Assembly (NCBI GenBank): GCA_002269645.1
Contig: NIVC01000481.1
Coordinates: forward strand, 310,001-374,000
DNA: 64,000 bases
Direction: 5' to 3'
Source of the DNA: Macrostomum lignano
Lineage: Eukaryota
A program made the translations under genes and the position numbers. How positions within the stretch are numbered: position 1 is the stretch's first letter; every line of letters begins with the position of its first letter. Of the stretch, positions 8,889-26,187 are shown piece after piece. The notes beneath the pieces are model-generated. The model saw only the letters and a list, made by a program, of their open reading frames with translations. It did not search any database and was not told where the DNA came from.

Positions 8889-9554
8889 TATCCCTACAAC
8901 TACAACAGGCAAAGAACAGAATCCATGCTTCAGCCACCGCTATTAGCAAATTTGCGTTGAGCAAATACTTGATTTGGCTCAAACAGATATGATGAAGAAT
9001 TTTCCCCAACCCAGCCTCCTAACCATGCAGGAAAGGGAATTTCAAATTAAAAGACACGCACATGCAACTCGTACATTGTATTTTGAGCCCCGGTTAAGCG
9101 CCGTAGGGTCGAGTTTTTCCTTTCTCCGAGTGAACAGCTCAACTTTGAAGAAAAATTTTCAACTAGCGCAAGGCAATAGACGCGCGGCTGCCTCATCTCT
9201 TGGGGAAAGATGCTGCACGCCCTGTGCATACACTTCAGTATAGCTAAGGCGGCTTTAAGGCAAAAAAACAAGATCAGTCTTCAAATATGTGCAGAGGAGT
9301 TTCTCGTGTCAGGGCAGTGTGGAGGGTCATGTATAGCTGATGTCCTTGATTCTGTGCCACTGCTGACAACCAAAGGTACCGACTGTAAGAAGATCCCAGG
9401 TACAAGGCGGAGAACCCGGCCAAACTTTTGATATGAAAAGATGAGAAGCAGACGACAGTGACCTTGTAAAAAATAAATTGAAAAAGTACTTTACATTGAA
9501 CAACTCTGCCTTAACAAACTGCAGACTGGTATGAATTATGAATATTTTCAACCA

Positions 9555-10625
9555 GTATGACCGATTTCTAAATTGATCTATGACCATGGAGTGGATCATT
9601 ATGTATGACCGATTTCTAAAATGATCTATGACCACGGAGTGGATCATTATGTATGACCGATTTCTAAATTGAGCTATGACCACGGAGTGGATCATTATGT
9701 ATGACCGATTTCTAAAATGATCTATGACCACGGAGTGGATCATTATGTATGACCGATTTCTAAATTGATCTATGACCACGGAGTGGATCATTATGCATGA
9801 CCGATTTCTAAATTGATCTATGACCATGGAGTGGATCATTATGTATGACCGATTTCTAAAATGATCTATGACCACGGAGTGGATCATTATGCATGACCGA
9901 TTTCTAAATTGATCTATGACCATGGAGTGGATCATTATGTATGACCGATTTCTAAAATGATCTATGACCACGGAGTGGATCATTATGTATGACCGATTTC
10001 TAAATTGAGCTATGACCACGGAGTGGATTTTATGTATGACCGATTTCTAAACTGATCTATGACCATGCAGTGGATCATTATGTATGACCGATTTCTAAAA
10101 TGATCTATGACCACGGAGTGGATCATTATGTATGACCGATTTCTAAATTGAGCTATGACCACGGAGTGGATCATTATGTATGACCGATTTCTAAAATGAT
10201 CTATGACCACGGAGTGGATCATTATGTATGACCGATTTCTAAATTGAGCTATGACCACGGAGTGGATCATTATGTATGACCGATTTCTAAATTGAGCTAT
10301 GACCATGGAGTGGATCATTATGCATGACCGATTTCTAAATTGAGCTATGACCATAGAGTGGATCATTATGTATGACCGATTTCTAAATTGAGCTATGACC
10401 ATGGAGTGGATCATTATGTATGACCGATTTCTAAATTGAGCTATGACCATGCAGTGGATCATTATGTATGACCGATTTCTAGAATGATCTATGACCATGT
10501 AGTGGATCATTATGCATGACCGATTTCTAGAATGATCTATGACCATGTAGTGGATCATTATGCATGACCGATTTCTAGAATGATCTATGACCATTCAGTA
10601 AATCATTATGCATGACCGATTTGTA
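9555..10625. repeat. 48-bp minisatellite (tatgaccgatttctaaattgatctatgaccacggagtggatcattatg)
   Basis: 16-codon periodicity in ORFs 9327..10019 and 10010..10594. Confidence 0.95.
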
Positions 10626-11339: not shown

Positions 11340-12020
11340 GAATAATACTTAGACACGGAGAAGTAGAAGTATACACGTGACAGGTAGAGGTAGACATAAG
11401 AGGTAGCAGTAGACACAGGAGAAGTAGACATGGGAGAATTAGAAGTAGAAACAGAAGTAGAGGTAGACAAAGGAGGAGCATACATGGGATAATTAGAAGT
11501 AGATAGAGAGAGAAGTACGAGTGTAGACATAAAATTAGACACTGAAAAAAGTAGACACGGGAGTAGACACAGGAGTAGACACAGGAGTAGACAAGGGAGA
11601 AATAGACACAGGAGTAGACAAGGGAGAAATAGACACAGGAGTAGACAAGGGAGAAATAGACACAGGAGTAGACAAGGGAGAAATAGACACAGGAGTAGAC
11701 AAGGGAGAAATAGACACAGGAGTAGACAAGGGAGAAGTAGACACGGGATAAGTAGACACAGGAGAAGTAGACACAATGAAGTAGACATGAGAGAAGTAGG
11801 CACAGGGGAAGTAGACACGGGAGAAGTAGACACGGAGAAGTAGACACGGGAGAAGTAGACACAATTAAGTAGACATGGGAGAAGTAGACACAGGAGAAGT
11901 AGACACGGGAGAAGTAGACACGGGAGAAGTAGACACGTGAGAAGTAGACACGGGAGATGTAAACACAGGAGTAGATACGGGAGAAGTAGACACAGGAGAA
12001 GTAAACACGTGAGAAGTAGA
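11340..12020. repeat. Degenerate GAGAAGTAGACAC-core repeat
   Basis: Variable 12-29 bp units sharing gtagacac. Confidence 0.9.
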
Positions 12021-12539
12021 TCGCTTACAAATGACAGTAGAAAGAAGTAACTCAGTAAGCCAGCTAAATTATCTTTTTGATTTCTCAAAGAGATAGATTT
12101 TAAAACGAAATAGTTAAAGCCTTCTTGAGGGTTGGAACAAAGCAAATTTATTGATATATTTAATCGCGTTAGTAAAATTATAATTTAGTATTACATCTGG
12201 TCAAAAATTTTATGCTTGATGTGGGAAGAGAAAAAGCTGGATCTGTCAAATAAAAATAAATATTGCAGGATATTGTCAAGAGAAAAAGACGGGCGAACCA
12301 AAAAACCCAGTCAGGTTTGAAGGACAAAAAAGGTCAACGACCCAGTTAACGGAAGACTAAAAAGGCAAAATTATAAATGATTACTCATTAATACAGCATA
12401 TATGCTCGTAATGATTAGTAAAACTATCACCGTTTAGAAGAGCAGGGAGAAAATACATGTATGCGTTTTGGTTGGGCAGGCTGTAGTTGAGACAAAAAAG
12501 TAGACACTAAGATCTGAACAAGTAGAGTATTTATTATAT

Positions 12540-13985
12540 GGAGAAGTAGACAGTGAGATATGGGGGAGAAGTAGACAGTAAGATATGGGGGAGAAGTAGA
12601 CTGTGAGATATGGAGAGAAGTAGACAGTGAGATATGGGGGAAAAGTAGACAGTAAGATATGGGGGAGAAGTAGACAGTGAGATATGGGGGAGAAGTAGAC
12701 AGTAAGATATGGGGGAGAAGTAGACAGTGAGATATGGGGGAGAAGTAGACAGTGAGATATGGTGGAGAAGTAGACAGTGAGATATGGTGGAGAAGTAGAC
12801 AGTGAGATATGGGGAGAAGTAGACAGTGAGATATGGGGGAGAAGTCTAAAGTAAGATATGGGGGAGAAGTAGACAGTGACATATGGGGGAGAAGTAGACA
12901 GTGAGATATGGGGGAGAAGTCTAAAGTGAGATATGGTGGAGAAGTAGACAGTGAGATATGGTGGAGAAGTAGACAGTGAGATATGGGGAGAAGTAGACAG
13001 TGAGATATGGGGGAGAAGTCTAAAGTAAGATATGGGGGAGAAGTAGACAGTGAGATATGGTGGAGAAGTAGACAGTGAGATATGGGGGAGAAGTAGACAG
13101 TAAGATATGGGGGAGAAGTAGACTGTGAGATATGGAGAGAAGTAGACAGTGAGATATGGGGGAAAAGTAGACAGTAAGATATGGGGGAGAAGTAGACAGT
13201 GAGATATGGGGGAGAAGTAGACAGTAAGATATGGGGGAGAAGTAGACAGTGAGATATGGGGGAGAAGTAGACAGTGAGATATGGTGGAGAAGTAGACAGT
13301 GAGATATGGTGGAGAAGTAGACAGTGAGATATGGGGAGAAGTAGACAGTGAGATATGGGGGAGAAGTCTAAAGTAAGATATGGGGGAGAAGTAGACAGTG
13401 AGATATGGTGGAGAAGTAGACAGTGAGATATGGGGAGAAGTAGACAGTGAGATATGGGGAGAAGTAGACAGTGAGATATGGGGAGAAGTAGACAGTGAGA
13501 TATGGGGGAGAAGTAGACAGTGAGATATGGGGAGAAGTAGACAGTGAGATATGGGGAGAAGTAGACAGTGAGATATGGGGAGAAGTAGACAGTGAGATAT
13601 GGGGAGAAGTAGACAGTGACATATGGGGGAGAAGTAGACAGTGAGATATGGGGGAGAAGTCTAAAGTGAGATATGGTGGAGAAGTAGACAGTGAGATATG
13701 GTGGAGAAGTAGACAGTGAGATATGGGGAGAAGTAGACAGTGAGATATGGGGGAGAAGTCTAAAGTAAGATATGGGGGAGAAGTAGACAGTGAGATATGG
13801 TGGAGAAGTAGACAGTGAGATATGGGGAGAAGTAGACAGTGAGATATGGGGAGAAGTAGACAGTGAGATATGGGGAGAAGTAGACAGTGACATATGGGGG
13901 AGAAGTAGACAGTGAGATATGGGGGAGAAGTAGACAGTGAGATATGGGGGAGAAGTAGACAGTGAGATATGGGGAGAAGTTGACA
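12540..13985. repeat. 23-24-bp minisatellite (gagaagtagacagtgagatatggg[g])
   Basis: Direct reading. Confidence 0.95.
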
Positions 13986-14271
13986 ACTTGAAAAGAAGTT
14001 CTTATCGAATCAGTAATACCTTAATTACCGGAGTAATTATAAATCCTGCTAATTAATAAGTGTTACTATATCATCAGGTAAAAAAGGATCAGGAAACGAT
14101 AAATTTTGATTTTATTCATTGAAAATACACATCACGCGCACAGAAAAACGATCTGGTCCCTCACTAGAAGCTTTTTAGCTAGAAAAAATTCCTATCACAC
14201 TACTACTCCGAATTCTCCAACAGTAGTATAGTTAGCAATAGACTTTTAGACAGTTCTCTCATCAACTAAAC

Positions 14272-17200
14272 TCAATCGGTCTTGCTAAAGTCGCCGGTTT
14301 CGTCGGAGTTGGGCGCCGAAATTTGGTCGGCAGCGGCGTCCACGGCGCGCCTTTTGAGTTCGCCCTCGGCTGGAAAATAATTCACACACACAAACAAAGG
14401 AGAGTCGAGTTATATTCGGTTATAATGAGGATATTCATCATTAGCAAGTATACAAAAGCAATTACTTACAATCTTTTTTACTCGCTGGGATAAAACAATA
14501 AATTTTAGCATTTAAAGAAACCATTTACCAGCAAGGCATTTCTAGCTTATATTCTATTATACTACTTACTGAAAAACTGTTCATAAGTAGTATAAATCTT
14601 ATTGTTTTATAGGAAAATTTGAAGCATAGGTCAACGATATGTAATAGAAGAAAAAATAGAGCGAACTCACTCGAAAACATAAACATTAACCCAGAACAAG
14701 AAAAACTGCCAGATAAAAGCAATATCTATCAAATCCTTATTATTATTATTTCTCATTTTTTCCAATTATCAAACAATTTGACAGTTGATATTTTCAAAAT
14801 AAGAACTTTCGTTTTACTTCATGGCTTACCCTGAGCCTGAGCTTGCTGAGCCGATTTGAATACTGCGTATTGTTTGAATATTACAGTAATACTGCATTAC
14901 TACATTAATACATTGGTATTATTAATATTATTTTTCTTTACTATTATTAACAGAACAGAAAAATACAGAATTATAAGGAACAAATTTTTATTAATAAAGT
15001 GCACTGTACTTATTAGATATGGATAAACTATGTTAATTTAGGTCCAATTAGGTCTGCGTACTCTGTGCTCATTTAGGTCTGGTTAGGTTTAGGTGCACTC
15101 TGTGCTAATTTAGGTCTGATTAGGTTTAGGTGCACTCTGTGCTAATTTAGGTCTGATTAGGTTTAGGTGCACTCTGTGCTACTTTAGGTCTGATTAGGTT
15201 TAGGTGCACTCTGTGCTAATTTAGGTCTGGTTAGGTTTAGGTGCACTCTGTGCTAATTTAGGTCTGATTAGGTTTAGGTGCACTCTGTGCTAATTTAGGT
15301 CTGATTAGGTTTAGGTGCACTCTGTGCTCATTTAGGTCTGGTTAGGTTTAGGTGCACTCTGTGCTAATTTAGGTCTGCTTTGGTTTAGGTACACTCTGTG
15401 CTACTTTAGGTCTGATTAGGTTTAGGTGCACTCTGTGCTAATTTAGGTCTGGTTAGGTTTTGGGACACTCATTGGAACTGATTAGGTTTAGGCGCACTAT
15501 GCTAATTTAGGTGGTTATTAGGTGCACCATGAGCTAATTTAGGTCTGGTTAGGCTTAGGTACACCATGAGCTAATTTAGGTCTGGTTAGGTTTAGGTGCA
15601 CTCTGTGCTATTTTAGGTCTGATTAGGTTTAGGTGCACTCTGTGCTAATTTAGGTCTGGTTAGGTTTAGGTGCACTCTGTGCTAATTTAGGTCTGCTTTG
15701 GTTTAGGTACACTCTGTGCTACTTTAGGTCTGCTTTGGTTTAGGTACACTCTGTGCTACTTTAGGTCTGTTTAGTTTTAGGTGCACTATGTGCTAATTTA
15801 GGTCTGGTTAGGTTTTGGGACACTGCTAATTTAGGTCCAATGAAGTTTTAGTACACTCTGCTAATTTAGGTCCAGTTAGGTTTGGGTACAAGCTGTGCTA
15901 TTTTAGGTCTGGTTAGGTTTTGGGACACTGCTTATTTAGGTCTGGTTATGTTTAGGTACACCATGAGCTATTTAGGTCCAATTAGGTTTAGGTACACTCT
16001 GCTAATTTAGGTCTGGTTAGGCAATGCAAAACACTTACCCTCAGTAACCAACTGCCCAGCAGCGTCATGCACTTTGCCCAGAGTGGCATCAATGCTCTTC
16101 TGATGCTTGAGCACAATTGGGCGAATCACTCGGTTGTAGAGCAGCACAGATCCGTTGGCAGAGATTGGCACCATCAGGTAGATGAGGAAGATGCACTTTA
16201 GAAAGGCGTACAGTGGAATCCACCAGAGAAAGATGTCAGTGAATGTCTCCAGCAGGCTGAAGGCGGCGTACACAACCCAGTAAGTGAGCCATTTGGTGTC
16301 GTCATCTTTCTCGTGAGTCTCAATGGCCTTCACAGAGGCGTAGGCTGGGTATAGAAAGCCAATGAAGTTGGCCAAGAAGTTTGAGCCATAGCCAAACATC
16401 AGGTAGATGGCCAAGAATGCAATGAGACCTGTTTTTGGTTTGAGTGGTGGGTTTTAACATGTGCATAATTCATTATCAACAGAGGACTGAAAGTCTAACT
16501 GGATTGATTTAGTTTCGTATTTTTTCATACGAAAAATTGTTTATGATTGTGCTCTGCATAAACTACAGAGTATAGTATACCACACAGACCTTAGAAAAGA
16601 TTTGTATACAAACTTAGTATCCCTTTGAAAGCTTTTTGATTGTATTTGGGTAAATTCTATATAGACTTACAATAGTATTCCTTCAGTTTTTTAATTTGAT
16701 AATATATTATTGTATATCATGTGCCCTTTACTAAAACCATATATACAGTATGCGGCAGCTAAATCCGGAATTTATTAAACTATTTTAAAAAAGCTTGAAA
16801 TCCATAGAAAAAAGCACTGTATTTTAATGTAAATTGGTAAGAGCATATGTTAAATGATGATAGAGAGTTTTACTCAAAAAACCCGCCATCAGCAGCGACG
16901 ACCTTCTCTAGGCGGGACCGGAAAGAGCGGCAGGCATCGGCAACGACCTTCTTGTCAAGGTTCGCCATTGCCTCCACAATGGCCGCCTTGAGCAAGTCCT
17001 TGGTGTTGTAGGACTTGTGGTTCACCTGTCTGGTCAACTCGCCCCAGACAAAGTAGTCGAGTGGATTGCAGTCAGGGGAGGAGGGAGGCCACAAGTCCGG
17101 CGACCAGTGGTGGGGCACATTGCTGTACAGCCAGGCTTGGGTGGTCCTGGCCTTGTGGGCTGGTGCCGAGTCCTGCTGGAAGACGTATGGCCTCCCTTGG

Positions 17201-20200
17201 GCAACCCGGTCCATCCAGGGCTTCACAGTTGTCCTCAGGATCTTGATGTAGTCGTCAGCGCCAAGGCGGAGGCCGTCCTTGAAGATATACGGTGGCATGA
17301 CATCCCCCTCAGAGCTGACAACACCAAACACCATGATGTGGGCAGGGTACTTGCTATGCATTGCTACAGGTACAGGTATTCTATATGGTTTAAAAGCTAT
17401 ATAAATACAGACGTCTGAAATGCTGCAGTTTTTTCTCTTTAACGTGTCGTCTTTGAGCTGGAATTGATTGAAACCTTTCCGGATTTAGCAGCCGCACACT
17501 GTAATTACCATGTATAATCATATAGTATATAGGAAGTTATCAATTAGTAACTATTTCCCTATAAAAATCAAAGCAACTAGATAAACAAAGTGATCTTATC
17601 TAGGCTAAAGAAGCTAAATGATAGTTTAAATTTTAGAAACATTTAAACTAAGTAAAACATCATGCTATTTTTTAATCACAAGAAGGAGCCTATGACTTTC
17701 TTTTGAACATGGTATATATAATAAAGCTAGACTATATAGTATATTTAATCAAGTATTCATGACTATTTTGACTGACTAATACTACTTCAATATGAAACTA
17801 ATACAAAATAAGGAAAATGGAAAATATATATTGACAAAGGTAAAGCCAAAACGCCACGGTTAGGCTGGGCACTGATATTGAGGAAAAAATTGCCACAAGA
17901 CGGCACCTATGTGCCATTAAACTACTGCCTTTCTGTAGTTTGGAAAGCCCACTCATTAAAATTCATGTGCCTATCTTTGCTGTGTATGGCACTATATGTT
18001 TCGGTACACTTTAAAACAAAATATTTTATTGCTCTAATAGAATTTTTGCTAATCAGATGATAATTATGAATAGACCACAAAGGACTTTGGGAGTAAATAT
18101 TGCCCCATATCTGCTTGAGCAATAAAACGCTGCACCACAGGTAGCTTATGCCTTATAATTGCAGTCATAAAGAGGAATTTATCAATAGTAATAACACAGT
18201 AGTATCTTATCTATAATTGCTTTGTAATATTTCTGCCAGGTGCGTTAACTTGGTTATCATACTGCTCAATTTACTTATAAAGGTTTGATCTAGTTCTATT
18301 TGATCTAAAACAAGCGAGTGCCTGAACTGAAAGAGCTGTTTGCATAGCTTGTACTGTCTACAATGCCAACGACAAAAAAAACTCATAACGAGAACAGGCA
18401 AAGTTTGTGCCTGCTCTGCTTGAGACGAGCTTCTGCGCTGATTTCTTCTTGCTCTAATTTCGAATCTGTGGCAGCCGACTTGTTCCAGGACTACGAGGCA
18501 GTGCGGCACTTTCTACCTGAAGGAGTTTGCCAGGGCTGCAGGGGCGTTTTATCGTCACTAAGAAGTCTGACGCCTCGTGCTCTGCCACCGCGACCAGATT
18601 ACGAGAAGATAATAGCCGACATGAAGAGTCTGCCTCCAGCCACCAGAAGCAGACCGGATTGCAACTGCCAACTGTGCGAAATGGCTCGTGGCAATCACCA
18701 CAAAGGCAGCGATCCAAAGACGCCTTACACAACAGGTCCTGCTCGAGCCCCACCTGGTCGACCACGCAAAAGATCCCCAGCGCCAGCTGAAGGAGCAACG
18801 GCTGTGCTTTCCTGCTCATACTGTCATTCTCCAGTTGGGCGTGGCAAACAGCACAAATGCAACTCGACAGCTAAGGTGACTAACATCGAGCAAACAGTCA
18901 GCCCAAGGACAAGGGAGATGCTGGCCAGCAACTGCATTGCCGAAAAGACGGGTGGGTCGACGGCGGATTCGAATTCGATCACTCTAGCCAGACATCGAGG
19001 CGGCCATCCGATTCGAGTTGCTGTGCATGTTGCTCAAAACAGCAGTGCGAGCTTTCCTCCAACGAGGACGGACACTATGATGCACTTGAAAACAACTCTG
19101 AATCTGAGCAACAATCAAGTGCTACAGGCTGCTCAAGTGCTTCGTGCTGGCGCGAGCTCATCTCGTGCAGTCGAGTCAAACTTGAAGAAAATTTTGGTAC
19201 AGCAAAATCGAGCATTAGAGGATTACTTCGACATCCAGAATCTCCAGTTCTCGGAGCTGACCTCGACTGCCGCAACAGCCGACACTATTTGCCGCCCGAC
19301 TGTTGTCTGCAACGACTCGGTCAAACTCATTGCACATGTTGCTCAGCAACGCAGTTTCAATGATTTTCACTGTCTGCTGGGTCTCGATGGTGGCGGCGGA
19401 TTTTTTAAAGTTTGCGTTTCGATAATTGGCTCTAACGCAAAACCCGAAATCGGAACTCGAGGAGCCAACAGCAGGAAATTCTGTGACACGGGTGTCAAGA
19501 AGATCCTGTTGCTTGCGATCGTCAACGACGTTCCTGAGACTTACGGAAATATTCAGGCTCTGCTCGAGGCGATCGCTGTCAACGAACTTCAAATCCCAGT
19601 CACTGCAGATATGAAAGTTGCAAACATCATCTGCGGACTGCAACCTCATTCCTGTACACATCCGTGCCCCTATTGCGAAGCTCTGGCTCCTCTTACAGAA
19701 AATGGTGTGCCAAGAACTCTTGGGAGAATTCGGCAGTTTGCTCAGCAGTTTCAAGCAGCTGGCCAAGTTCGTGCAAAGGCAAAGAACTTTAAAAACTGTG
19801 TCAACATGCCACTGCTACCAGGCGATGATGACAAAGAAGTTTTGATGCTTCTGCCGCCACCTGAGCTGCACCTGCTCCTTGGAGTCAGCAACCGACTGCT
19901 GGACAAGCTCAACGAAGCTTGGGGTGCGAATCGCGCGTTCGAGTGGGCTCATCAGCATGGCATTATTCGAGCTGATTACAGAGGTGGCATGATGGAAGGA
20001 AACGCCTGCCGCCAGCTGCTCCGCAAATCACCGCAGCTTCACGCTGATCTGCCTCCACCATTACAGCCGTACGGGGCGTGTCTGATGGCGTTCGATCGGC
20101 TGGTCAGCAGCGCCTTTGGAACCGAATTGGCGGCAGACTTTGAAGAGGCAATTGAGAATTTTCGACTGGCCTACATGAGCTTAAGCTTGCCTGTCACCCC

Positions 20201-21827
20201 AAAAGTTCACGTTGTCTTTTGCCATGTTGGAGAGTTCTGCCGGCGGACAGGGCAAGTGCTTGGCAGCTGCAGCGAGCAAGCAGTGGAGAGTGTTCACTCT
20301 GATTTTGCCAAAACGTGGTCACGGTACAGCCTGCCAGCGCACCATGCTGAGTTTGGCCAAAATCTTTTGCGCGCCGTGGTTGCTTACAACAGCCACCACA
20401 TTTAATCCCGGTAACTCGGTTTTCTGCTTTACCGGTAAAAGAAATGGCAGTGGTTGTTAGTCTTACAGTAAAGTAGTATTCAAAGGACCCTATAAATTTA
20501 AAATACTAAAATTTTTGCAAGCTCCCGTACTGTAGAAAGCTTTCATACTTTTGCTACTTTATATGCTAATACGAGCGTACCTTGCAATATTATTGCAGAA
20601 ATGCATGTAGTTCTGGTTAATATTTGAGGAACTTGCTACACAAAAAGAATATAGTTATTTTGAAATTTTTCTATAAAACCCATGCTGTTTCCGAGTATTT
20701 AAATGTAAACAATTTGTAATGTTAGAAATCGTAAACTTATTTAACTTACTAACTTACAAGCTAGTTAACAAGTAAAACAAGCAATAATACTACACAAACA
20801 TTAACCTAAATAAACTTCTTGTAATCTTGTACTCTTTTTTGTACAAGTATACATTAAGTCTGTCACTTGCTAAAAATTTCTGCTTGTCTTATTAACGAGA
20901 GCAATTAATGAGAGCAATTGTACACAGATTGTACACAAAGATAGGCACATGAATTTTAATGAGTAGGCTTTCTGAACTACAGAAAGGCAGTAGTTTAATG
21001 GTACATAGGTGCCATCTTGTGGCAATTTTTTCCCCAATATCAGTGCCCAGCCTAACCGTGGCTACCCTAGCAACTTTTCCCTTTTTGTCTTAATCCCTAG
21101 ATATCTTCATATATAAAACAATGCATACAATACAATATATAAAAATATGTCAATTACAATATATCAAAAAATAATATGGTAACAAAAACTACAAAATGAC
21201 ATGTGTGACACCTAGACCTAAAGAAGAAATTTTAGAATGCTAAAATTTTTATAGATTTTTTTATTGCAAACAACTTGTCTTTTGCTCAGAAAAGCATAGT
21301 TTAATATATTTAAGATAGGGTCTAGGGAAAATACCAATTTTTATGTTGAAATGTTGTTACTAGGCCTATAAAGATAATTATATATTCATAAGAAAATTGC
21401 TTGTTGTCTTACCCAAATATTAATAAATTATTTCTGGGCACTTTTGCTATTATATTGTTTTATATTTTTCATTTCATTGATTCTCCTTCGTCTAAAACCG
21501 TAAACTGTTTTTTGTTAAAGACCTAATTAGTATAGTAATTAGTAATAATAACTGCACTGGTAAAAACTTTTTTGTCACTATATTACCATTGGGGGGCATT
21601 GGCATTATGTTACCATTAGCTTTTTATTTTTAGCTATTTTTTCACGTTTTCCATCATTCATAAAAATATTTCTTAATGCTCAACATGCTCAACAAAAGAC
21701 CAGCATCGTACATACCAAGAGCAAAGTACAATCGTTTGACTCCAGTCTTTTCTTCCACGACTTTACACGCCTGACCGATTGCGTTGTCCTGATTGAGAAA
21801 CTTTTCAAGCCTTTTAACGTACTCCAT
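14272..21827 (-). CDS. REEP5: REEP5/DP1/Yop1-family ER-shaping protein (TB2/DP1/HVA22 domain), 4 exons, about 210 aa
   Basis: complement join(14272..14369,14830..14862,16039..16428,21716..21827). All introns are phase 1 and GT-AG; total 633 nt. Exon 1 reads MEYVKRLEKFL...EEKTGVKRLYFALG. Exon 2 has IGFLYPAYASVKAIET...DDDTKWLTYWVVY...WIPLY..LKC.FL.YL, the family signature. Confidence 0.92.
15035..16020. repeat. 37-bp minisatellite rich in TTAGGT, in REEP5 intron 2
   Basis: Period 37 (15061 to 15098). Confidence 0.95.
16746..17501 (-). mobile_element. Tc1/mariner maT-family (DD37D) element, internally deleted, 756 bp
   Basis: 25-bp TIRs cagtatgcggcagctaaatccggaa (16746..16770) and ttccggatttagcagccgcacactg (17477..17501), 2 mismatches. 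TA on both flanks (16744-45, 17502-03). Carries the C-terminal half of a transposase. Confidence 0.9.
16870..17361 (-). pseudogene. maT transposase C-terminal fragment, 163-aa open frame lacking the HTH and first catalytic Asp
   Basis: KYPAHIMVFG, FQQDSAPAH and WPPSSPDCNPLDY motifs; 37 residues between the 2nd and 3rd catalytic Asp; ends ...ADGGFFE*. Confidence 0.88.
17855..21060 (+). mobile_element. Chapaev-type (CMC; RAG1/Transib-related DDE) DNA transposon, apparently full length, about 3.2 kb
   Basis: 125-bp TIRs at 17855..17979 and 20936..21060, 6 mismatches (all transitions), termini CACGGTTAGG...CCTAACCGTG. One uninterrupted 680-aa transposase ORF. No 4-5 bp TSD visible. Confidence 0.88.
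18363..20405 (+). CDS. Chapaev-like DDE transposase, 680 aa, intronless
   Basis: N-terminal H-x7-C-x2-C...P-x3-C-x2-C...CxCxxC zinc finger; AT-hook-like PGRPRKR; GLDGGGGF (D); VTADMK (D); CPYC...H-x4-H (KVHVVFCH) zinc site; ELHLLLG; EGNACRQLL; SEQAVESVH (E). Confidence 0.88.
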   Translation: MPTTKKTHNENRQSLCLLCLRRASALISSCSNFESVAADLFQDYEAVRHFLPEGVCQGCRGVLSSLRSLTPRALPPRPDYEKIIADMKSLPPATRSRPDCNCQLCEMARGNHHKGSDPKTPYTTGPARAPPGRPRKRSPAPAEGATAVLSCSYCHSPVGRGKQHKCNSTAKVTNIEQTVSPRTREMLASNCIAEKTGGSTADSNSITLARHRGGHPIRVAVHVAQNSSASFPPTRTDTMMHLKTTLNLSNNQVLQAAQVLRAGASSSRAVESNLKKILVQQNRALEDYFDIQNLQFSELTSTAATADTICRPTVVCNDSVKLIAHVAQQRSFNDFHCLLGLDGGGGFFKVCVSIIGSNAKPEIGTRGANSRKFCDTGVKKILLLAIVNDVPETYGNIQALLEAIAVNELQIPVTADMKVANIICGLQPHSCTHPCPYCEALAPLTENGVPRTLGRIRQFAQQFQAAGQVRAKAKNFKNCVNMPLLPGDDDKEVLMLLPPPELHLLLGVSNRLLDKLNEAWGANRAFEWAHQHGIIRADYRGGMMEGNACRQLLRKSPQLHADLPPPLQPYGACLMAFDRLVSSAFGTELAADFEEAIENFRLAYMSLSLPVTPKVHVVFCHVGEFCRRTGQVLGSCSEQAVESVHSDFAKTWSRYSLPAHHAEFGQNLLRAVVAYNSHHI

Positions 21828-22949
21828 GGCAGCTTGTAGCAGACTCTACTTTCAATTACTTAACAAGGAGTTTTTGAAAGAAAGTTTAGTTAATTGACAG
21901 GTAAACAGTTTCTTAGTCAGTTTGAACGCTGATCTATGCAGAGAAAAAAAGTAGCAAAATTTCTAAGAAAGATAAGCCTTGCACAGAGCAAAGCTACGTA
22001 GGCATATAAACAATATAAAAAACGTATTTTAGCCAAACTTTAGTTAGTTTTTCAGCAGAACCTAGTCCATTTTTAACATTAAAAAAACTTTTTAAAATGC
22101 TATTATGTAATCACAACCAAAAAAGGAGTAAAATTTAGTCATAGCATCAAAGTTATAGCTGAGCTGTGACCTAAGATGTATTTGACTTTGAGTTGTATCT
22201 GAGCTGTATTTGAGCTATATCTGAGCAGCTGTATAGCTCCACTGACAGTCGTCAAATAGATCCAGCCTCCAGCAGCGCGGAATCTTTTGAGGCGTCATGA
22301 TGATAAGGAAATCAAATCAACGAGACAAATAAAACAGATTTACATTTACATGTAGGTGAAAGCACAGGGTTCTGATGGATGCTTTACTGTCAGAATTGAG
22401 GCTGTAACGATCGAGATTCTTTTGTTTTTTATCAAAACTGAAACTATACTCCACATATTTATTGTTCAGAAAGTTTAGTTGTAGGCTTTAACTTTTTTCT
22501 ATCTTGCTATTATTTGTATTTAACATAAAAAACTGCGTCCTTTTAATGCATGTTTCCTGTCAAGGATGCGCATATGCAATGCATTAATTATATCTTCAAT
22601 TAAATGCTACGAACTACGAACTATTCGTTCTACAAACTATTAAATGTTATTGCGTTTCATTCGAGGTGAATATATGCATTTATGCATTCCACATCCGAAT
22701 CAAGGGACCACTCCACTATAGAAGTTACTGCAGTAAACGCAAATTGGTTCAAATCAAAATCAAAATAGAGTCGAGCTAATCCACTGCCATGGCAATCAAG
22801 TGCGAGCGTTTCGACTAGGGTATTTATAATTGTCTTTCAGTCTGTGCATACATTCGTGCACATATGGTTGCGGAAAATAGAATACATCACACATGCAGCT
22901 GCCGCCGCCAGACGGGGCCGGAGATGAGGCGGATGTTAAAAGGATTAAA

Positions 22950-23850
22950 GTTGGAGCTGCATGGTGTTTATTTTTGTTTGAATCTGGCACAGTGACAAAC
23001 ATTAACCACAATGAAAACCAAAGCTATATTGTGAGACGAATGTCTGAAAAAAAAGAAGTGACGCAAAAAAGAGAATGCGAGCAAATCGAACTCCTCCCGG
23101 CAACAACACTGCTCTGCGACCGCTGTGGGAGGAAAGGGCCCTAAACAAAGGCAATCGCTGAGCTCCCAGACTCGCGAGCGCAGAGTCAGAGACACCGCTG
23201 CATTCTAGGAAGATAAGAAACCGACCGTGATTGTCTGCTGCTCACGTGACAGCAAGAGAGAATGCGGCAGTGCAATTCGTGCGCATGATTGGCGCCTGCA
23301 GCAATGAGTACGGAGGGTGATATCTTCACTGATGACACCACCCACGTTTGTGTCTCATGTTCTGCAACAACGACCGAATGCGATCGGTTTGGCGTTAGCC
23401 ACAGGAGGAGTTTCTGGACGACTTTGTGCGGCTAGCCGGCTCACAGAGTGTTTCAATGCACGCCTGGAGCAGAATGTGGCTGCACGTGGGCAGACCTATG
23501 TATGCAGAACTGTTAAAGCAACAGTCTCTGTAAACCTTGCTATACAGCAATCTTATACAGCCTGCAGAACTTGCATTCGTCATGGCGAAAACGCTGCGCT
23601 GAATCGAGAATAGCAAAGTGCAGCTGCTGCATGAAACCAGGCCGCCAAAGTCGCATGAAAGCCCATCGGCTTCGTAAAGCGAAGACTTTAGCAGGGTGCC
23701 TTGCAAAAATGATGAGCAGTGAAGCCATTTGCAACAGCTCTGCCCCGAGAGTTCATCAATCGGCTGGTGATCAGGATGCCACGACGAATGACAGTTACTT
23801 TTGAATGCTCGGGGTTCCTATACACACGCGATACTGAAAGAAGCATTAAA
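22950..23850 (+). pseudogene. Heavily decayed Tc1-like transposase relic
   Basis: Tc1-like pieces occur in the correct order across frameshifts and stops: FESGTV...SYIVRR; RP*LSAAHVTAR; AHDWRLQQ*...IFTDD; SVSMHAW; LPREFINRLVIRMPRR...SGFLYT. TIRs not identified; boundaries approximate. Confidence 0.5.
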
Positions 23851-24364
23851 AGAAATTGCTTAAATTTTTGTGGCGCGTAAAAGCGTTAGTTGGGGGGGGG
23901 GGTTAGGGGGTTAGCTGCCGCTGTGTATACGATAGAAGAAGTTTTGGAAGACAATGCAGCCATCCCAAATGACTTTTTAGAAGCAACAGAAATTATACGA
24001 CTTGAAGAGTTGCTTCAAGTTGCTTCCTTCTGTCTATCTTAACTTGACAAGTTAGCCATGCTTGTCGTGCCACCTTCTCTGGGAAACTAGACTTCTCTTT
24101 CTTTCGACTTCAAAGCCTCTCTGAGCAAAGACTAAGCAGCGCACAATTCAAGCATCCATTCTTACCACTTTTTTCTGCTTCCACTCTGCTTCAAAACAAT
24201 GTAGTTTTAAAGGCTGGTGGAGATGTCGCAGAGCACAAGATCAGAACTGAGCTAGAAAAAAAGGTGAGCGAGCGGCTTGCAAGAGCTACAACAGCAACAG
24301 CTATCAGTGAGTGACTTACGATCTGCCAACCGACTTCAAGCTGCAAAGTTCAAACTCAAGAGAT

Positions 24365-26187
24365 ATGCAGCAGCTCCTAGCAGCCGCATTCGCTCTGTTA
24401 GCGACGGCTTGCCAGACAGTCGCAGGCAGCTGCGCCAACCAGAAGCTGTTCTCTTTAGCTCAGCCCGACAGCCTGACGGTGCCGCAGTCCTTCAAGTCCG
24501 TGCAGGCAGTTGGCAGCGAGCTGCAGTGCTCTCTGCAGTGCAGGGCCCAGTCCGGTGTCTGCTTCGGCTTCTACTGGCAAGAGGCGAGTCTGTTGTGCCA
24601 GCTGTTCAGCATCGCTGCGTTCTTCAGCAAGTCGCTGTGGCAGCCGAGCGCCAGGTCGGTCAACGTCTTTACGAAGCCGTTCGACTGTGAGTTTTGCGCT
24701 GATTGAATGCAATGGCATAAATGACTTGTAATCACGGAGATTCAAAGCTCTTAAATGTTTTGTCCTTCGCTTTGCATGCTGTGTTACCCACAGAAGCAGC
24801 TTTGATTTTGCTTAACTTGCAGTATGAGAGCTCCTCCAGGTGCTCACAGTCCAAAATCACAAGTCCCATGGATCCGTCCCACAGAGCTCCTTTCCTGCCT
24901 TTTTTAATCGATTGGACAAGCGTGGTTCCTGCGGTTTAGGCTACTGCTTTTATCTACTGTAATATTTTAGTGGATTATCTTGGTAGGTTGCTACCACCAG
25001 GCTCCTGGTGTTCCCTAATCCTAGGATGTAGTATTTAAAGAACTGATTCAGGACACCAAATGAAAAATTTTAGGTTTGACACAACGTAATTTACATAAAA
25101 TTATAATTGATAAAACGCCAATTGCACAAGTGGTTCTTTTCATTAATTTCCCCCTTCTAGGTAAGTGCTTGGGCAAGAATCCCAGTTTTGAGGCAAGACT
25201 CCTCTTAGTGCGATTCTAAGTCCTATTCCTTACCTTGCTTACCTATTCCTTTCTTTCCTTACCTATTTTTACCTTGAATTCCTTTTGATAGAATTCTTTC
25301 AAGTCAGAAACCTCACTCGGAAGATGAAGCGCTTGCGTTTCCCCAGAGCCCAACTGCTCTTTACTAGTAAAGAGCCCAAAGTCCCAAAATTCGCGATCTA
25401 CTCTACCCTAATTATTTTCCCTGGCTAAAACTACTGATAGTAGTGTAAAAGCATATTTGTCCCGTGTCTATTTCTACCCCTAAATTTTGCCCTACTACAC
25501 GATTATCGATAAGGTCCTGGCATCAATGACGTTGCCTGTTGCAGAATCTCTTTTAGTGTCTATTTGTTAAAGTGATAAGTTTCTAAGCAAGTCCAAATCC
25601 AACCCGAGTGAAGCAGGAGGAAAAGTTAAAGGGCATACAATTGAAATACAACTGCAGAAAGGTTTGTTTCTCATCAATACTACGAGCACTAATTCCGCCC
25701 AATGTCTCTTTTTGCAGTGTCAGCAGAATCCATCCTGACTGTTCAACACTGCAGTCAGATTTCTACTCTAGCGGGTGCAGTCTGCAGTCTCGCAATTGAT
25801 GGCAACACGAATCAGCTCTTTAACGGAGGCTCCTGCACCCACACTTACGGAGGCGACTTCCAGTGGTGGCAGGGCGACCTCGCTCAGCAGTCCCAAGTCA
25901 CGGCAGTCCGCATCTTCAACAGACAGGACTGCTGCGCTGAGAGGCTCAACAACTTCACCCTGTTGGTTGACGACGTCGAGTGCGCCAGGGTGGACGCGGA
26001 TCCGAGCTTCTCCATCAAGATGGTCAGCTGCCTCGGCTACGGCAGTCGGGTTCGCCTCGTCAGTCGCTTGCGTGGTTGGGTGTTCAGCCTGTGCGAAGTT
26101 GAGCTGTTTGGCTTCACGGTCTCTGTGCTGCCTAAGCGGACTGATGAACGAGTTTTTATGAAAAATCTGCCTGAAGCGTTTTTTTAA
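24365..26187 (+). CDS. Secreted PAN/apple-domain + F-type (fucose-binding) lectin protein, 2 exons, about 263 aa
   Basis: join(24365..24686,25718..26187). Donor T|gtgagt and acceptor tttttgcag|TG are both phase 1. Signal peptide MQQLLAAAFALLATACQTVAG; PAN pattern CSLQC-x6-CFGFYW-x6-CQL; F-type lectin motif H-x26-R-x-D-x4-R (CTHT...NRQDCCAER), AIDGN, WWQGDL, LCEVELFG. Confidence 0.85.

Follow-up and report, generated by a model that had tools for sequence, protein, structure and literature searches.

A maT relic in the first intron of a REEP5-like gene

A stretch of 64,000 nucleotides (nt) of the flatworm Macrostomum lignano was analysed (contig NIVC01000481.1, positions 310,001 to 374,000; hereafter the window, in whose coordinates all positions are given). 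Positions 12000-26000 of the window match this contig of assembly GCA_002269645.1 with 100% identity. Within the window, a 756-base-pair (bp) remnant of a DNA transposon, which we call the relic, lies in intron 1 of a REEP5-like gene. The original prediction for this locus had regarded the relic as an exon trap that could give rise to a fusion of REEP5 with a transposase. As described below, it is very probably an inert intronic leftover of a cut-and-paste transposon of the maT family (DD37D), and we infer that it evolves neutrally and is not exonised.

The host gene is located on the minus strand and belongs to the REEP5/6 (TB2/DP1/HVA22) family according to both its domain and its orthology. 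Exon 2 encodes a TB2/DP1/HVA22 domain (Pfam PF03134, E = 8.8e-30), and after splicing the exons match M. lignano BOX15_Mlig010854g1, which comprises 199 amino acids, with 100% identity. The protein shares 57–64% identity with proteins named REEP5-like from molluscs, nemerteans and other spiralians. The gene is organised as follows:

21716..21827, minus strand: coding part of exon 1 (37 codons plus 1 nt, i.e. phase 1; splice donor GTATGT at 21715)
16429..21715, minus strand: intron 1 (5287 nt), which hosts the maT relic and a 3.2-kb element
16039..16428, minus strand: exon 2, with the TB2/DP1/HVA22 domain
14272..14369, minus strand: exon 3, with the stop codon

Ladders of BLAST self-matches and the raw sequence itself furthermore revealed long tandem arrays. 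An array with a unit of ~25 nt is located downstream of it (window ~12540-13985), and intron 2 is filled by a tandem unit of ~37 nt resembling cctaaaccagacctaaattagcacagagtgca (window ~15030-16020).

Within intron 1 the relic is oriented in the sense direction of REEP5. Read in the direction of transcription, its parts are:

17502..17503, unstranded: TA target-site duplication on the 5' side
16746..17501, minus strand: internally deleted, non-autonomous maT (DD37D) Tc1/mariner element of 756 bp, recognised by a unique pair of inverted ends, by transposase homology and by a copy at a duplicate locus (L002)
17477..17501, minus strand: 5' terminal inverted repeat CAGTGTGCGGCTGCTAAATCCGGAA (25 nt)
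17374..17476, minus strand: 5' untranslated remnant without ATG; the deletion has its junction within the direct repeat tacctg-tacctg, at ~17374-17380
17362..17373, minus strand: four transposase codons (V-P-V-A) before the Met, identified by tblastn and alignment homology, which include the AG at 17365-17364
16870..17361, minus strand: open frame of 163 codons, the C-terminal half of a DDE domain, starting at a family-conserved internal Met
16771..16776, minus strand: AATAAA adjoining the inner side of the 3' inverted end; the equivalent position of a relative (L004) reads AATATT
16746..16770, minus strand: 3' terminal inverted repeat (25 nt) with two mismatches to the 5' one, which aligns with the 3' end of L004
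16744..16745, unstranded: TA target-site duplication on the 3' side

The 163-codon frame matches Tc1/mariner transposases of the DDE_3 type with E = 2.6e-70. Its identity to the closest DDE_3 transposases is 58–67% (64% for those of the spider Uloborus diversus), and named matches from crustaceans (copepods), a cephalopod (cuttlefish) and insects are 55–65% identical. The Pfam DDE_3 score of the frame (26.5 bits) is just below the cut-off of 28.6 bits because the domain is truncated. Two catalytic residues, D64 within FQQDSAPAH and D102 within NPLDYF, occupy conserved columns of the alignment. As 37 residues lie between them and the third catalytic residue is an Asp, the frame carries the DD37D signature, by which maT is defined. 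When the family profile was compared to the PDB, it covered only the C-terminal half of the catalytic domains of Sleeping Beauty, Mos1 and SETMAR. Sleeping Beauty (E = 5e-16) is matched better than Mos1 (E = 6e-7), but this difference does not discriminate for family placement.

The frame starts with a Met that the family conserves at an internal position (alignment consensus VPxVM-x-TKFPA). The tblastn homology to full-length transposases extends four codons further upstream, to position 17373, where the relic reads V-P-V-A-M and the family consensus is VPIV-M. Full-length relatives comprise about 345 amino acids, and those at L003 and L004 carry ~180 further upstream codons, which encode a helix-turn-helix region and, within the motif FFSDEKNF, the first catalytic Asp. 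These ~180 codons, or ~550 bp, are missing from the relic; with them restored its length would be the ~1.3 kb that is typical of maT elements. The relic therefore cannot bind its own ends or cut DNA, since both the DNA-binding domain and the first Asp are lacking, and it is non-autonomous.

In shuffled sequence no comparable pair of inverted ends is expected, and the pair of the relic is unique in the window. Similar ends (CAGGGTGGCGCAG.TAAATCCGGAA) are present in the relatives L004, L015 and L014. Beyond the inverted end, the 5' part of the relic has no significant similarity to its relatives: scores of its 5' 145 nt against the full-length ones were 25-27, which is within the range of shuffled sequence (mean 24.7, standard deviation 3.5). 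As a consequence, the 5' breakpoint is placed only by analogy with L015.

Elements of the maT/DD37D family have a length of ~1.3 kb, a transposase of ~346 amino acids and inverted ends of 13-48 bp (bioRxiv 10.1101/2022.10.13.512200). The relic shares with them the 37-residue spacing with Asp as third residue, the TA duplication and 25-nt ends, within this size range, that begin with CAG. It differs from them in its length of 756 bp and has lost the first Asp together with the paired-like DNA-binding domain and the nuclear localisation signal, all of which are present in the relatives L003 and L004. To judge from its ends and its frame, it is a deletion derivative of a maT (DD37D) element of the Tc1/mariner superfamily.

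Splice phase, acceptor and AATAAA of the relic

Several features had suggested an exon trap, and as plain descriptions they were all confirmed. The relic is a deleted maT element in sense orientation to REEP5 in intron 1, as its ends, the TA duplication, the DD37D frame and the position demonstrate. Exon 1 ends in phase 1, and the arithmetic by which G-CA yields Ala and continues in frame into the 163-codon fragment is right. An AATAAA is located just inside the downstream inverted repeat, at 16776-16771, and the 163 codons are open although the N-terminal part of this non-autonomous element is deleted. A hypothetical splice that joins 21716 to 17363 would give ...FAL-A-MHSKY..., in frame over 201 codons. 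At the acceptor that had been proposed at 17364-65 the AG is present and in phase, but it is transposase coding sequence, and cctgtag/ca represents the Pro-Val-Ala codons of the old transposase gene. We also considered an intron of the ancestral transposase that ended at this AG, and rejected it, as the relatives read straight through this position (...EEVPIVMHSKY...).

In front of the Met, the frame continues without a stop for 46 codons, and this stretch contains five in-phase AGs (17475, 17451, 17415, 17397 and 17364), each of which would open a fusion frame of 201-238 codons. Frame compatibility is therefore expected, and once the element lies in sense orientation, for which the odds are even, an in-frame AG is nearly certain. 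Intron 1 contains 349 AGs in total, 14 of them followed by at least 100 open codons in phase; several of these 14 lie antisense in the neighbouring 3.2-kb element. Its sense strand contains four copies of AATAAA and eight of ATTAAA. Three AATAAA motifs (21628, 21265 and 18030) are located upstream of the relic and must therefore already be read through by REEP5 transcription. Thus, the combination of an in-phase AG and an AATAAA is no more than chance gives.

The open frame needs no selection either, since it is expected for a young element. In simulated neutral substitution the frame stayed open with its ATG at a probability of 0.82, 0.66 and 0.36 for a divergence of 1%, 2% and 5%, respectively. 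The true acceptor of intron 1 is pyrimidine-poor. Acceptor strength was left unused as an argument: two introns of known structure were at hand, and their two true acceptors are very different.

The product of the hypothetical splice would combine 37 REEP5 residues, without a complete membrane hairpin, with half a catalytic domain that has no DNA-binding part. A collection of 5.8 billion proteins, including the NCBI and UniProt proteomes of M. lignano, contained no protein more than 67% identical to the 163-amino-acid frame, fused or not, and no match to it came from M. lignano. A protein with both REEP5 and transposase parts was not found in this collection, and exact-sequence look-ups of the 163-amino-acid frame and of the 680-amino-acid frame of the 3.2-kb element returned no entry.

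The original prediction had likened the locus to the host-transposase fusions SETMAR and CSB-PGBD3. The likeness lies in the arrangement, as the frame of the relic is in sense orientation in a host intron, is preceded by an AG and can be read in phase from the upstream exon. SETMAR, whose catalytic domain matches the family profile, retains a whole transposase with its DNA-binding domain, whereas the relic is half a catalytic domain. CSB-PGBD3 also retains a whole transposase, and both fusions are conserved and have transcript support. In contrast to these systems, the relic has neither a functional transposase module (at least a DNA-binding domain) nor a visible signal of constraint, and the protein collection holds no record of its fusion. 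The features that pointed to a fusion of this kind are inherited from the transposon or occur at chance level, so that the claim itself is left without support.

Duplicate locus, deleted relatives and rival explanations

A second copy of the host gene, 98-99% identical, is present on NIVC01002699.1 (L002). This is in keeping with the redundancy for which the M. lignano assembly is known, 180 Mb of it being blocks with an identity of 95% or more (PMC5730564). The maT insertion is found in L002 too, as a 98.9% identical copy with the same TA, junction, AG and AATAAA, and is therefore older than the split of the two copies. As to insertion polymorphism, no presence/absence difference was seen between these two duplicate loci. 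Whether other copies share the deletion and the acceptor had likewise been raised. L002 shares both. In ~300 kb of M. lignano DNA (the window together with L001, L002 and L005-L013), the only finds were the relic itself, its duplicate and one unrelated antisense relic, and no further copy of the relic came to light.

In the relic frame, window and L002 differ by three changes only, one synonymous (P24) and two non-synonymous (I26F, V140I). The corresponding numbers for REEP5 exon 2 are four synonymous and no non-synonymous changes. The changes in the frame appear to match the neutral expectation and no constraint is visible, though three changes are too few to rule constraint out. The 353 nt between the relic and the 3.2-kb element are free of differences in the stretch aligned between window and L002.

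Three paralogous REEP loci (L005-L007) harbour a different maT relic, which is antisense, more decayed and derived from the C-terminal part, 100-215 bp upstream of exon 2. In these loci, whose REEP gene is P0183, it is located at ~9300-9900, is 71% identical to P0002 over 38 amino acids and adjoins a mariner-like N-terminal fragment. The same intron of related REEP genes has thus gathered transposons independently, and relics are commonplace there.

Deleted elements with the same C-terminal frame also occur in other genomes. Seven of the best 120 homologues of the frame are exactly 163 amino acids long, and four of these loci were inspected. In three of the four (Uloborus diversus L014, L015 and L017) an internal deletion has left either both ends or a 5' end that can still be recognised; L016, the fourth, is truncated where its contig stops. 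L014 lies on Uloborus diversus CM049482.1, where its deleted elements are annotated as 'uncharacterized protein' genes. L015 comes from an ENA sample, and L017 is a Logan contig of 920 bp that represents a complete deleted element flanked by TA. Like the relic, these Tc1/mariner deletion derivatives have kept their ends, lost the N-terminal half by internal deletion and show an open frame of 163 codons from the same conserved Met, whereas the breakpoints differ. Their junctions are located 4 to 12 codons before the Met, and either a 5' leader or 30-38 N-terminal codons were kept. Since the breakpoints differ among the three, the deletions are independent and do not represent one lineage.

Calling a frame of exactly 163 codons requires a break no further than ~19 codons from the Met, and the clustering of breakpoints is therefore largely a matter of ascertainment. 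For the same reason the recurrence of 163 amino acids was rejected as evidence of a deletion hotspot or of a selected short form. The pattern probably stems from the way in which frames are called, although a hotspot or a short form under selection may contribute. Dead maT copies commonly retain an unbroken C-terminal frame, for which no host function is needed.

For the inert leftover, the following course of events is proposed. What inserted at a TA in intron 1 would have been either a full-length element of ~1.3 kb or a copy that had been deleted beforehand and was mobilised in trans by a full-length element. An internal deletion of ~550 bp would have removed approximately the first 180 codons, and with them the DNA-binding domain, the nuclear localisation region and the first catalytic Asp, while both ends, the 5' leader and the last 167 codons were kept. 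Interrupted gap repair after excision yields internal deletions of such kind. The relic would be immobile alone and would be spliced out of the REEP5 pre-mRNA with the rest of the intron. The youth of the copy would account for the surviving frame. The AG in front of the Met is part of the old coding sequence, and the AATAAA would be part of the A+T-rich 3' tail of the element.

As an exon trap, by contrast, the relic would accept exon 1 at the AG at 17364 or at another in-phase AG, and the transcript would end at the AATAAA. The product REEP5(1-37)-Ala-transposase(C-terminal 163), 201 amino acids in length, would then lower or compete with full-length REEP5. The 201-codon frame that results from phase 1 and CA suits this idea, but the AG is remnant coding sequence, and in-phase AGs and AATAAA occur at chance level. 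The relic lies in sense orientation upstream of the true acceptor, which is itself pyrimidine-poor so that a weak site is possible, and acceptor, frame and AATAAA are all kept in L002. Nevertheless, two non-synonymous changes against one synonymous change give no sign of constraint, the product would have no complete hairpin, no DNA-binding part and half a catalytic domain, and the fusion protein was not found in the databases. We consider both such a trap and a functional fusion very unlikely; the idea is unsupported rather than refuted.

The relic might also be expressed on its own, from its own leader and promoter. The internal Met would then be the first AUG, as no ATG lies between the 5' inverted end and this Met, and the free fragment of 163 amino acids would be dominant-negative towards the maT transposase. 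This appears very improbable: the recurrence of deleted elements with this C-terminal frame in several genomes, which would speak for it, is largely due to ascertainment, the fragment has neither the DNA-binding domain nor the N-terminal transposase part, and the changes between the duplicates look neutral. Even less is to be expected from a domesticated fragment or regulatory insert that is kept for a function in cis on REEP5, e.g. as enhancer or splicing modifier. Its presence in both duplicate loci is expected for any insertion older than the duplication, and the 353 nt without differences between the relic and the big element, though in its favour, stand against the different, antisense and decayed maT relic of the paralogous REEP loci, which indicates a transposon-rich intron. 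Very little probability is likewise left for the relic being an alternative last exon that ends part of REEP5 expression in both duplicates, or for the recurrent C-terminal frames being a trans-acting inhibitor of maT.

Some points weigh against the relic being inert and neutral. Three substitutions are too few to give any power for a rejection of purifying selection. The AG or the AATAAA may be used, e.g. by cryptic splicing at noise level, which would be compatible with the data. The youth of the copy is judged from the fact that its conserved residues are intact and that the duplicates differ by 1%. Furthermore, a missing fusion isoform says little because the GenBank annotation of M. lignano deliberately dropped transcripts overlapping repeats (PMC5730564).

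A neighbouring element with a predicted RAG1/Transib-like fold

Intron 1 hosts a second transposon, which is separate from the maT relic:

17855..21060, plus strand: transposon of 3206 bp, antisense to REEP5, with CACGG...CCGTG ends and inverted repeats of 127 nt
18363-20405, plus strand: intact frame of 680 amino acids of this element

No Pfam family matched the 680-amino-acid protein, not even with the E threshold raised to 10, and the protein collection contains only ten homologues, all of them unnamed. Its conserved motifs are GLDGGGG, D416 and PC..C, and the N-terminus is rich in Cys. The AlphaFold model has a mean predicted local distance difference test score (pLDDT) of 65 and is reliable for residues 280-680. 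Foldseek matched it to the RAG1 core (E = 5e-12), to amphioxus BbRAGL (7e-8) and to Helicoverpa HzTransib (2e-6), with TM-scores of 0.4-0.5. The sole match of the sequence profile was HzTransib, with a marginal E = 0.19 over the H..H / SE..E motif. According to the model, the protein is predicted to have a RAG1-core-like fold with Asp/Asp/Glu and zinc-binding Cys/His motifs, as expected for the Transib superfamily, which comprises Transib, TransibSU, Chapaev and Chapaev3 (PMC4411706). With RAG and Transib it shares this predicted fold and the CAC of its ends (CACGGTT), whereas its target-site duplication is 4 bp instead of the 5 bp that RAG and Transib make (PMC7204232).

A second copy of the 3.2-kb element, 99.4% identical, was found on another contig (L008 9493-12698) with the 4-bp duplication GAGC, which suggests recent activity of the element. 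In a sister family (56% identity), 4-bp duplications were seen at five loci among L009-L013, four of the five being exact. Clean 4-bp duplications (n = 5) read GAGC, ATCT, TTGC, AACC and CTCG. The 4-bp duplication suggests a Chapaev-like branch rather than Transib proper. Since the Cys-rich N-terminus also suggests this branch, the 3.2-kb element is probably, with the fold taken from the model, a Chapaev-like member of the Transib superfamily.

The 3.2-kb element is absent from L002, where the site (L002 10779-10784) reads CCAAAAC-GCTA-TA-GCTA-CCC. The site in the window (17851-17854 and 21061-21064) is CCAAAACGC-element-GCTACCC and has no matching 4-bp duplication. The L002 site could be an excision footprint that carries palindromic extra bases, but a small rearrangement during insertion would fit as well. 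Read as a footprint, it looks like the type that is left by hairpin-forming transposases.

Two UniProt models of M. lignano, P0243 (1171 amino acids) and P0245 (818 amino acids), fuse the 680-amino-acid frame to Peptidase_M16 and ubiquitin-conjugating enzyme domains. They are fusions of the type that the original prediction had in mind, although with another element, and may stem either from faulty gene prediction or from true read-through.

Repeats make up more than half of the M. lignano assembly (PMC5730564). In such a repeat-rich genome the relic is one more decayed DNA transposon in an intron and as such matters little. It does call for caution, as an open frame, an in-phase AG and an AATAAA in a sense intronic element are what a young deletion derivative shows by default and not evidence of exonisation. 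The RAG1/Transib-fold element next to it, with its intact frame, its 99.4% identical copy and its footprint-like empty site, is the more promising lead. If the exon trap were true, as junction transcripts would reveal, the relic would represent an early stage of exon capture from a transposon in a flatworm that is amenable to transgenesis, where it would be directly testable.

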